From Entomortierella parvispora E1425 (lineage: Eukaryota; Fungi; Mortierellomycota), in the NCBI GenBank assembly GCA_020891255.1, contig BQFW01000009.1, positions 1,364,001 to 1,428,000 of the forward strand: 64,000 bases of DNA, given 5' to 3'. Positions 21,507-24,508 of this stretch are shown one piece after another; the first letter of the stretch is position 1; every line of letters starts with the position of its first letter. The notes beneath the pieces were generated by a model. The model saw nothing but the letters and a program-made list of their open reading frames with translations, was not told the origin of the DNA and made no database searches. The position numbers and the translations under genes are program-made.

Positions 21507-21563
21507 TAGGAAATAACGTCTTTTTTGGTAGGAAATAACGGCTTTTTTTTTTTTTTTTTTTTT
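21507..21563. repeat. Left target-site array: two copies of TAGGAAATAACG(G/T)C, each followed by a T run (T6, T21)
   Basis: Copies at 21507-21520 and 21529-21542. T21 at 21543-21563 is the element's poly(A) tail on the minus strand. Confidence 0.9.
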
Positions 21564-24310
21564 GCAACATTTTATTTGCTATGTCGAGCCAAAGAAGTGA
21601 AGTGCGAGACCAAACTATCTACAGCCTGAGCAAAGCCGCGTGGTCCAGACGACAAATGACCCCGGATCCCCGCGCAACAAATGCCACGACTCGTCGCCGT
21701 GTTATAAAGAAGAGTAAAATGTTACAAAAAATGTATTTGCCCCATCTTTTCTAATGTCGATAAATGGACCTGGCCACGCACACAAGCCAGTAGTCGCTGG
21801 TCAGCCAGCGTAGGATCGTCTTGGGCACCTGGGCAGAGGCATTGATGGTGGTCAGTGTAAGCCTTGCCGCATTGGCAGATGCCTGGCGCAAGGATCGCAC
21901 CAGAGGCATTGTTCCACGGCTGCCCCGACGGGGCTGCCTGTTTTTTCATCTTGGGGCGGATGCCTTGAGACTTCTCCCAGGCAATGGTGACTTCGCACCG
22001 TGTCTTCCAGATACGTGCAAGGGCGTCTCTGTCCAGGCAGCGGATAAACTGGTGAGCAACTGCGACCACAACCGAGCGAGGTCCTTTAATAATCGGTGTC
22101 CAGGCTGTGATCAGCGCCGAGTGTAACAGTCCTTGGTAGGCAGTGACGATCGACCGTGCTGACGGCACTGGAGAGGCAATCTGTCCCACTTCAGGAGGTC
22201 TTATTGTTGCCAAGTCGTGGAATGCAGCGTACAGTGATGTCCACAGAGCCGTGTCCGATGGCTGATGCCATTGAAGTGCTCTCGGGGCGACAACGTTGGG
22301 TGTGCGGGCTTGTTGCTTACGATTCTTTTGGTAGCTTCCTCATTGGCTCTGGTGATGGCAGCTCTGCCCCACTTTGGAATAGTGGCCACTGCTTCCTCCC
22401 ATATCTGCCTTTGTTGGTTGACTGAGTTCGGACAAGTCCACACATGGTTGTTGTCCTCCTGCGCGTCGCCACATCGACAGCAGAGTGCGTCTTCGTACAT
22501 GTCTGGGTAGCGCGCTTGCATGACTGTAAGTGTTGGTAGCATCCCATGCAGTTTTTTGATGTGCTGTGTGCGTCGGGTAGTGTCCCCTCTGCTACTGAAG
22601 AAAGTATGGACTGGCCGTTTGGCGTGGATGATCGAGAGGGCAGATCGCCACTCCACGTCGTCCAAGTCGCTGATCGCTCTCTTAACTCGATTCTGTGCTG
22701 TCCATGTTTGGTGGCGGCGAATAGTGGTCTGTTGCTTGAGGAACTGGCGGAAGTCGGACTCCAACTGTTGTCCATGGCAAGATGCAATAAAGGTGATGTC
22801 GTCCTGGGTGCTGAGGTCCGCCTGCCATGGTGTCGTGTCCTGTTCAACCGCCTTTGTTGCGATAGCATCCGCCGTTTCGTTGCCCTGGTCGCCACTGTGC
22901 CCACGCACCCACTCAACCTCTGTGCGGCCCTCACGTTCTGCTACTACTGATGCCAAAACTGCCCAAAGGCCTGCGTGTGTTGCCCGTTGTCGCTTACGAG
23001 GCAAAGTTGTGTGGCGGTCGACAACAAGGTCTTGATACGAAGTGACAACGCCCTCGTTATCGAGGCGGACCAAAATATCTTGTCCAGGAGGCATGGACAC
23101 GATTGCGGCCAGAAGTCCCATGAGCTCTGCTTTGCCTGAGGATGCCTGACCGTCAGCACGACCCGGGATGGAGTGGGGGGCGGTAGTAGAGATGTCGGCC
23201 ACGCCAAATGCCATTGCGCATTCCTTCGTACCAGCGCGGACCATAAAGCCGTCAGAGTAGAGTACTTTACGCTCTTGTGAAATTGGTGACTGGCGTAGCT
23301 GGTGTAGAAGTTCAGCTTGGGCTTGAGGCATTGAAAGTGGGCCTACCTTGGCAATCTGCTCATGACATGGAGGAGGCAAAGGAGGGGGTGAGATGTGGAG
23401 AGGATGAATAGCGCTTTGGTCAACAGTGACAGTGAGTGGGTGTAAGTGTTGTTCAACACGTTCTCTGTTGGTGGTCACATCCCGGTCCCGTTCCTCGATA
23501 GCCTGGGAAATGTAGTCTGCTCTGATTTGCTGCCGTTGCTCAGCCTCCGCCAGATGTTGTTGATGTTTGTTGACTGCAAAGTCGTGTGCGTCCTTGAGTT
23601 TGCGGGCAAGGCGATCGGCAAGGAGCCCAAGTTGGAGCTGTGCACGGACTTGTAGACTCCGGAGCCCCTGTTGGGCGATCCGTTCAGCCTCCTTGATAGC
23701 GGTGGCCAGCTGTTGTGGTTTCGTGGCCAACAGACGTCGATAACGTGAAGCATCGGACTGAAGCTGTTGGCGCCTCTTTTCCAACGCGGCCTGCAGCTCT
23801 TGGACGAGCTGAGTCCTGGCTGGGATGGTGTCTGAGTCAGCTGCATTAAGACGTGTGGTCAGAGCGTTGTCAAGCCAACGAGAAGATCCGTGAAGCAAGT
23901 CGTCTGCATCTAGTGGCAGTCGTGCCAAGTACGTCGATGGCGGTGTGTCAACAACAAGATTGTTGGTGGCATCTATGCTGGCGGAAACTGAACGCGAAAG
24001 TGGAGTTAGGCCAAGGGTGGTGTCTGTGTCAGGGAAAAGCCGCCGAACGGCAGGGGCTGCAATGAAAGTGGGTGAAAATGAAGAAAACTGTGAAGAGGGT
24101 TGTGAAGATAACGGTGTTGATAAAAAAGGAGTGAGTGATGAAGAAAGGATAGGTGACGAAGGAGTGATGACAGGGGAGGAAGAGAGGGATAAAAAGGAAG
24201 GGCCGCTTGCTCCCAAAGACGATGGCGTTGAAGGTAACAGAGAAGAAGAAGGGGACAATGTAGAATGAGAAGAAGAAGAAGAAGACAAAGAGCCGATAGG
24301 AAATAACGGC
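21529..24310 (-). mobile_element. Non-autonomous non-LTR retrotransposon (L1/Tad-like 3' half, no RT or endonuclease) with poly(A) tail and target-site duplication
   Basis: A21 tail at 21563-21543 and flanking direct repeats TAGGAAATAACGGC (21529-21542, 24297-24310). ORF has RNase H, a CX2CX8HX3C knuckle and the IWKTRCEVTIAWEKSQGI C-terminal motif. Confidence 0.85.
21722..24288 (-). pseudogene. Retroelement ORF: Ser/Pro-rich + coiled coil + RNase H + zinc knuckle, one frameshift near 22328
   Basis: RNase H catalytic residues present: VLYSDG, KAELMG, VRLDNE, WVRGHSG..GNETAD. Knuckle CCRCGDAQEDNNHVWTC. The C-terminal part continues in another frame to TAA at 21722. No AUG in the first ~320 codons. 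Confidence 0.8.
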
Positions 24311-24346
24311 TTTTTTTTTTTTTTTTTGATAGGAAATAACGGCTTT
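24295..24346. repeat. Right target-site array: GATAGGAAATAACGGC-T17-GATAGGAAATAACGGC-TTT
   Basis: Two identical 16-bp copies (24295-24310, 24328-24343). The last is followed by TTT|AA. Confidence 0.9.
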
Positions 24347-24434
24347 AACAGGATTTAATGAATACATCACGTGATCCGAGGATTATTGTTATAGTTATAG
24401 ACGTCTTATTTTATAAGTAAATATCGATTGGTGA

Positions 24435-24508
24435 GCTTCCGTGGCGCAATTGGTTAGCGCGTCTGACTGTTAATCAGGAGGTTGGTGGTTCAAGCCCACC
24501 CGGGAGCG
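24435..24508 (+). tRNA. tRNA-Asn (GTT), no intron
   Basis: Acceptor stem GCTTCCG/CGGGAGC, A-box TGGCGCAATTGG, anticodon arm TCTGA-CTGTTAA-TCAGG, T-arm GGTGG-TTCAAGC-CCACC. Confidence 0.97.

Follow-up and report, generated by a model that had tools for sequence, protein, structure and literature searches.

The DNA analysed here is a 64,000-nucleotide stretch of the genome of the soil fungus Entomortierella parvispora E1425, a member of the Mortierellomycota (positions 1,364,001 to 1,428,000 of contig BQFW01000009.1, here C9), referred to below as the window. Its subject is a long interspersed nuclear element (LINE), a retrotransposon without long terminal repeats (LTRs), of which a 5'-truncated copy lies head-to-head with a tRNA-Asn(GTT) gene, and the relation of the family of this element to genes that RNA polymerase III (Pol III) transcribes. 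The whole genome has been described as 38.66 Mb in size (N50 2,802,632 bp), with 11,641 genes and 192 nuclear tRNAs (PMC8759367). The sole tRNA that ARAGORN found in the window is tRNA-Asn(GTT).

Insertions beside the tRNA-Asn gene

Direct reading of the DNA to the left of tRNA-Asn gives a stack of three retrotransposition events at one target (Table 1). The 14-mer TAGGAAATAACGGC is present four times in the window, at 21507 (with one mismatch), 21529, 24297 and 24330. The occurrence at 21529 is followed by T21 and then by 2.73 kb of element, the one at 24297 by T17, and the one at 24330 by TTTAAC and unique DNA. Tail included, the minus-strand element occupies 21543-24296 and is bounded on each side by a 14-bp target-site duplication (TSD). 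The 16-bp duplication of the youngest stub takes in two bases (GA) of the 5' junction of the main element; this stub must therefore have been inserted later, and the order of the stack runs from the oldest event on the left to the youngest on the right. Each event restored the target beside tRNA-Asn. Whether the T6GG "stub" is a real insertion event is the least certain of the three assignments.

The first-strand nick can be placed between 24343/24344 and 24346/24347, the ambiguity being due to three T residues, and is thus 88-91 nt upstream of position +1 of tRNA-Asn. The 5' end of the element is turned towards the 5' end of the tRNA gene. An earlier note on this DNA had put the nick at 24346/24347, 88 nt from +1, and had described a head-to-head layout and repeated use of the site. 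Direct reading and the ARAGORN call bear out the position as 88-91 nt, and the layout was read in the same way. As for the repeated use, the main element and two poly(A)-only stubs, one of them doubtful, share the same nick.

Table 1. Features of the insertion stack and tRNA gene, with second-family stretches at other loci (positions are those of the window unless a locus is named)
Feature	Position	Strand	Evidence or remark
TAGGAAATAACGTC	21507-21520		Direct reading; copy of the target 14-mer with one mismatch
T6GG	21521-21528		Direct reading
Oldest event (probable): mismatched duplication copy + T6GG	21507-21528		Weakest of the three events
Main element TSD, left copy TAGGAAATAACGGC	21529-21542		Same 14-mer at 24297-24310
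Main element poly(A) tail, A21 (T21 on plus strand)	21543-21563	-	Preceded by the conserved 3' terminus of the family
5'-truncated LINE body: C-terminal part of ORF2 + 3' untranslated region	21564-24296	-	Alignment to the full-length C2 copy
695-aa open frame: low-complexity and coiled-coil linker, RNase H, Cys/His motif	22201-24288	-	
RNase H domain of ORF2	22846-23271	-	Pfam PF00075, E 1.3e-10, residues 340-481 of the 695-aa frame
Main element TSD, right copy TAGGAAATAACGGC	24297-24310		With 24295-24296, also left copy of the 16-bp duplication of the youngest stub
Youngest insertion, poly(A)-only stub A17 (T17 on plus strand)	24311-24327	-	Identical 16-mers at 24295-24310 and 24328-24343
GATAGGAAATAACGGC, proximal duplication copy	24328-24343		Direct reading; TTT at 24344-24346, then AAC
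TCACGTGA motif between nick and tRNA-Asn	24367-24374		General tRNA upstream motif in the genome, not part of the element
tRNA-Asn(GTT) gene, Pol III target marker	24435-24508	+	ARAGORN; Rfam RF00005, 67.4 bits at C9:1388435-1388508; T-rich terminator behind
Second-family stretch, L005	4319-4644		
Second-family stretch, L010	2743-3432		
Second-family stretch, L012	3017-4037		
Second-family stretch, L016	1201-1453		
Second-family stretch, L021	1248-1393		
Second-family stretch, L023	1186-1499		
Second-family stretch, L024	1018-1461		
Second-family stretch, L044			

The element family

The family is an APE-type non-LTR retrotransposon (LINE), since it has an apurinic/apyrimidinic endonuclease (APE) followed by a reverse transcriptase (RT) in its second open reading frame (ORF2), poly(A) tails, variable 5' truncation and TSDs. 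A DNA search with the window element found 52 matches in its own genome, most of them 5'-truncated and with a common 3' end, and a pattern search for the conserved 3' terminus found 47 ends genome-wide, versus 0 for the reversed control. Poly(A) tails range from A11 to A35, TSDs from 12 to 19 bp and copy sizes from ~100 bp to >9 kb, all with one 3' end. The longest copy, on contig C2 (L031 + L037), has two ORFs. ORF1 encodes 748 aa with an RNA recognition motif (Pfam RRM_1; not Transposase_22), and its translation includes a zinc-knuckle-like motif and a long disordered, coiled-coil tail. ORF2 is 2,323 aa long, and Pfam places APE (PF03372) at 47-280, RT (PF00078) at 658-936 and RNase H at 1809-1950. 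Coiled-coil sequence of ~850 aa links the latter two domains, and a Cys/His motif is present.

Over its full length, the element body in the window aligns with the 3' 2.75 kb of this C2 copy at 79% identity; to a copy on contig C16, the identity is 97.5%. Pfam detected no RT domain in the 695-aa frame of the window copy, which is truncated within the linker that separates RT from RNase H. Compared with the 2,323-aa ORF2, the frame also ends ~160 aa short of an intact protein, and this early end suggests a frameshift into the frame at 21722-22213. The ORF2 tail of this copy is divided between the minus-strand frames 21722-22213 and 22201-24288, by a frameshift or an early stop that comes in addition to the truncation.

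Among solved structures, human LINE-1 ORF2p comes closest, with E 4e-19 in the RT region and E 7e-8 in the endonuclease. Soil metagenomes and one assembly at NCBI contain homologues of ORF2, with identities of 57-60% and 36-39%. For ORF1, there was one database homologue only. No tRNA was called on the metagenome and NCBI contigs with ORF2 homologues, which stop near the element boundaries. The 5' termini of the related families open with a conserved AAACTCTT-pyrimidine-rich motif (L045 ~143, L046 ~82, L044 ~888, L048 ~75), and apart from this start their 5' untranslated regions (UTRs) have diverged. At one metagenome contig end, poly(A) is followed by two bases and then by the element 5' terminus again, which is a head-to-tail tandem. 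Sequencing run X3, from another study with an identical organism label, yielded contigs of very high word depth that are 90-97% identical to 21987-24046 of the window, and none over the unique window flanks. They could stem from transcripts, or from a related subfamily that another isolate carries. An empty-site joint was not found in contigs assembled from reads, and none of the runs is recorded as RNA; this search of contigs alone is uninformative on polymorphism and expression.

Pol III genes upstream of which the family inserts

For counting, loci were fetched from the genome (L-numbers) and reduced to independent insertion sites. The segmental duplicate L006 = L007 was left out, as were L026 and L027, where a nested LTR element replaces the 5' flank, and a composite repeat, present in 13 copies, in which one old LINE tail is included (the "74% family", L028-L030, L034, L035). 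The genome-wide Rfam search scored 63 of ~1,193 tRNA candidates, and the B-box pattern was considered at the first 100 places listed.

A bona fide Pol III gene lies head-to-head beside the element 5' end at 14 of the 22 evaluable independent loci. ARAGORN called tRNAs adjoining the 5' end at L001, L010, L012, L014, L017, L021, L023, L024, L025, L032 and L033 (tRNA-Asn twice, Arg-ACG twice, Leu-TAA, Leu-AAG twice, Thr, Ala, Val-AAC and Gly-TCC). An intron-containing tRNA was identified by Rfam at L013, another, tRNA-Arg(CCT), by ARAGORN with intron detection at L016, and a 5S rRNA gene by Rfam at L036 (64.8 bits). The 14 loci thus represent eight anticodon types, a pair of intron-containing tRNAs and a single 5S rRNA gene. 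Besides this 5S gene, the family takes tRNAs as targets whatever their isotype. Given 192 nuclear tRNAs in 38.7 Mb, the probability of at least 14 of 22 by chance is ~4e-45. Degenerate tRNA-like genes, correctly placed, were found by ARAGORN at relaxed thresholds at L020 and at the full-length copy L037, and two further copies (C5:653251 and C13:622963) stand head-to-head beside tRNAs by coordinates only. All 16 oriented cases are head-to-head, two of them known by coordinates only (P of one orientation = 1.5e-5). As a small internal control, the genome has a third LINE family, more distantly related, with no tRNA at its 5' ends. ARAGORN calls at 70% thresholds were noise and were not used, and calls at relaxed thresholds were plausible only in L020 and L037.

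The distance between element and gene was measured at sites with both duplications intact, by counting from the 5' end of the mature tRNA to the base that directly follows the nick. The ten nicks obtained lie at -91, -91, -92, -93, -95, -96, -101, -106, -112 and -116. Offsets vary even within one tRNA species (Asn, -91 and -106; Leu-AAG, -91 and -112), and the bases around the mapped nicks have no consensus and are not T-rich. The window, L012 and L025 each have an identical nick that was used three times, in L025 in a triple stack at tRNA-Leu, and in L021 the nick was used twice; several sites were used two to four times. Copies that share one nick differ in length, and the length of the duplication varies too. 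The earlier note had made its proposal depend on enrichment of other copies near Pol III genes, which was found at the 14 loci, and had named a sharp distance peak near -90 across different tRNAs as support for position-specific targeting. Of that peak, the narrow window and the several isotypes stand, with a median of -95.5 in place of -90 and a range of -91 to -116. Between the two modes that it had proposed, position-specific and sequence-specific, the position is favoured, as there is no conserved nick sequence and offsets vary within one tRNA species.

As far as can be read from DNA, the association, orientation, distance window, nick reuse and lack of a nick consensus together demonstrate targeting. 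The landmark must therefore be the gene or whatever binds the gene, and these features point to a protein on the gene, not to a DNA motif. We put at roughly 0.87 the probability that target-primed reverse transcription places copies of the LINE family ~91-116 bp upstream of Pol III genes, where they always point away from the gene.

A different reason for the distribution could be random integration followed by selection, such that copies persist only in harmless regions upstream of tRNAs. In a genome as compact as this one, with 11,641 genes in 38.7 Mb (PMC8759367), purifying selection on genic insertions is expected. However, selection cannot yield 16 of 16 copies in one orientation, a 25-bp window and reuse of the identical nick by independent copies of differing length, and intergenic DNA remote from tRNAs far exceeds the window that is occupied. 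We regard this explanation as very improbable. Even less credible is the idea that the tRNA belongs to the mobile unit, as a tRNA-derived promoter or through 5' transduction, or that modules of tRNA plus element were spread by segmental duplication. One such duplicate does exist, between contigs: L006 (C6:15144-17862) and L007 (C14:2239752-2242488) have identical flanks on both sides. Nevertheless, flanks are otherwise unique, eight anticodon types and a 5S gene are involved, the TSD sits between element and gene, and copies truncated at many points keep the same distance from the gene.

The possibility that the element reads DNA sequence has to be weighed against a motif that is common before tRNA genes. 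CACGTG, mostly as TCACGTGA, is found 54-108 bp upstream of 12 of the 16 Pol III genes examined, against a background of 5 per 64 kb (~1 per 13 kb; P ~2e-22). It occurs in the window (24367-24374) and upstream of the tRNAs in L012, L017, L021, L023, L024, L025, L032, L033 and L044. Two of the 12 CACGTG-bearing genes are tRNAs without an adjoining called copy of the first LINE family, and the motif gives the impression of a general feature upstream of E. parvispora tRNA genes, of which no report was found. In sequence-specific targeting, the endonuclease or a DNA-binding domain would read CACGTG, or a TTGGTGGCG-like motif, and not the Pol III complex. This would be in line with the presence of CACGTG within 130 bp upstream of 12 of 16 genes, with the position of the nick, which is distal to every CACGTG in 8 of 8 cases having both, sometimes by 1-5 nt only, and with a TTGGTGGCG-like motif at or near the nick in L014, L021, L023 and L019. 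However, nick and CACGTG are anywhere from 1 to 39 nt apart, and the motif is absent from three targeted tRNA genes (L010, L013, L014) and from the 5S gene; CACGTG was rejected as the ruler on account of this spacing and of these four targets. The TTGGTGGCG-like motif may lie before, after or across the nick. Moreover, a nested copy of a second LINE family upstream of tRNA-Thr, described below, lies within unrelated LINE sequence. We therefore consider sequence-specific targeting unlikely. Since the nick is distal to CACGTG in all eight cases, the motif may instead act as a barrier to insertion.

The TTGGTGGCG-like motif, as an observation in its own right, was seen at or beside the nick in five loci (L014, L021, L023, L019 and L020), and its placement relative to the nick (before, after, across or reversed) varies.

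The second LINE family has 36% ORF2 identity to the first and a different 3' terminus, of which the genome contains 17 ends. Stacks of both families, oriented alike, are found at seven tRNA loci (L005/L032, L010, L012, L016, L021, L023 and L024). In L040, both families stand in tandem, and no tRNA was found there. The sole full-length copy of the second family lies head-to-head with tRNA-Gly(GCC), ~146 bp from it. A 318-bp copy is nested in an older copy of the first family upstream of tRNA-Thr, and its gene-proximal end is ~132-135 bp from the tRNA. We infer that the nested copy landed after the older one, in sequence unrelated to the other targets. As the two families share tRNA sites and orientation, the habit of inserting upstream of Pol III genes probably predates their split.

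Several points weigh against the targeting of Pol III genes by the first family. Targeting is known here from sequence alone, and about half of the 47 ends were examined as DNA, the others having been compared by coordinates only. At 6 of the 22 loci, no Pol III gene, even a degenerate one, was found by any tool at relaxed thresholds, and Rfam at E values up to 1 gave no tRNA at the loci without a gene call. Among these, L018 and L019 have tRNA-like remnants recognized by eye only, L011 has the upstream motif without a gene call, and L022 lies in CT-rich DNA with no Pol III gene call. L006/L007 and the sequence-similar L009 are situated inside the 3' UTR of a second-family LINE copy, in opposite orientation, with no Pol III gene. 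In addition, the nick window of ~25 bp is wider than that of the TRE5 elements of Dictyostelium. At the 5S gene (L036), the 5' junction at -85 to -93 implies a nick nearer to the gene than at tRNAs.

Other observations concern insertions into the element itself and repeats related to it. In L017 (upstream, -1221 to -1207) and L036 (~450-480), two independent copies lie in the 3' UTR of an older copy, in the orientation opposite to it. Both are at the same element sequence, GCAAAGCCGCGTGG, which suggests a secondary hot spot within the element. The repeat left out of the count exists in ~13 near-identical copies of at least 2.3 kb (L028-L030, L034, L035; e.g. C4:2822356-2823077). At the start of each copy stands a 0.8-kb LINE tail, 74% identical to the window copy and with a separate A13; the unrelated sequence behind it includes a 288-aa frame on the reverse strand. 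The repeat probably arose when a different mobile element captured an old LINE tail. Finally, a tRNA-like sequence with a GGTTCGA T-loop, uncalled by both tools, is present in L002 (600-1000). It forms an inverted pair around a 102-bp LINE copy on C16, and a relative of it is found at the start of a metagenome contig (L045, 1-100).

Possible mechanism and known systems

A mechanism can be proposed in which a protein of the element would bind to the transcription machinery of Pol III (TFIIIB, TFIIIC or the polymerase itself) and, once docked, would hold the endonuclease at a fixed reach from the gene. By analogy with TRE5-A, Ty3 and Ty1, we infer docking on the Pol III complex. Candidates for the docking protein would be ORF1p or the unusually long ORF2 linker, and it is speculation that either of them sets the distance. 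Insertion restores the target next to the gene, and the same nick is therefore used again. Such reuse gives rise to head-to-tail stacks in which the youngest copy is closest to the gene.

According to a 2018 review (PMC5911963) and a 2016 survey (PMC5006619), non-LTR elements with Pol III genes as targets have been described from dictyostelids only, namely TRE5, TRE3, NLTR-A and NLTR-B, and our literature search found no tRNA-targeting LINE from a fungus. The closest likeness is to TRE5 of Dictyostelium discoideum, a two-ORF non-LTR element with APE that inserts upstream of tRNA genes, whatever the isotype, and opposite to their direction of transcription, uses 5S genes too and follows a safe-harbour strategy in a compact genome (PMC5911963, PMC5391098). 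ORF1p of TRE5-A binds TBP, Brf1 and Bdp1 (PMC5911963, PMC7459421). TRE5 inserts 44-54 bp upstream, whereas the E. parvispora nicks, at 91-116 bp, are about twice as far away. The ORF2 of TRE5 consists of APE, RT and a zinc finger without RNase H (PMC5006619), in contrast to the 2,323-aa ORF2 of E. parvispora with its RNase H and ~850-aa linker, and the host of the latter is a fungus. The E. parvispora element works like TRE5 yet fails two defining features of TRE5, the distance and the absence of RNase H.

RNase H is shared with NLTR-B of Polysphondylium pallidum and NLTR-A of D. purpureum, which likewise target the regions upstream of tRNAs (PMC5006619). These two are unrelated to the TREs and are an existing example of convergence (PMC5006619). 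They differ from the fungal element in distance (~50 bp for NLTR-B, ~4 bp for NLTR-A) and in their amoebozoan hosts. No dictyostelid homologue was among the ORF2 matches, an absence made uninformative by the length filter of the search.

Among fungi, Ty1 and Ty3 of Saccharomyces cerevisiae, together with related fungal LTR elements, are retrotransposons that insert upstream of Pol III genes (PMC5911963, PMC7459421); Ty1 integrase binds AC40, and Ty3 docks on TFIIIB (PMC5911963, PMC7459421). As LTR elements, they use an integrase, unlike the E. parvispora element with its target-primed reverse transcription and fixed orientation. Ty3 inserts at the start site and Ty1 over a wide range of up to ~1 kb, in either orientation. 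Human LINE-1, which gave the best structure match for RT and endonuclease, resembles the fungal element in the poly(A) tails, the 5' truncation and the duplications, of 12-19 bp in E. parvispora. However, LINE-1 has no RNase H, a much shorter ORF2, a Transposase_22-type ORF1 and no Pol III targeting, and the T-rich nick consensus is missing from the E. parvispora element.

On balance, we lean slightly towards a Mortierellomycota LINE lineage that comprises two or more families (ORF2 identity 36%), has soil-metagenome relatives and would have arrived at Pol III targeting without common origin with the TRE and NLTR elements of amoebae. Its ruler of ~95 bp would be a longer one, perhaps set by the unusually long ORF2 linker or by the docking of ORF1p on TFIIIB/TFIIIC, and the lineage would represent the first tRNA-targeting non-LTR element known in fungi.

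The targeting of Pol III genes is the textbook case of a safe place for a transposon in a compact genome. If the proposal is true, a fungal LINE with a tRNA habit would be a further case of convergence, in which both the distance and the protein architecture differ. The presence of CACGTG before most tRNA genes hints at an undescribed Pol III promoter feature in this fungal group. LINEs that are position-specific and independent of target sequence are models of interest for safe-harbour insertion, and in this case a culturable fungus would give experimental access to the mechanism, both to the element protein by which the Pol III complex is recognized and to the determinant of the distance.

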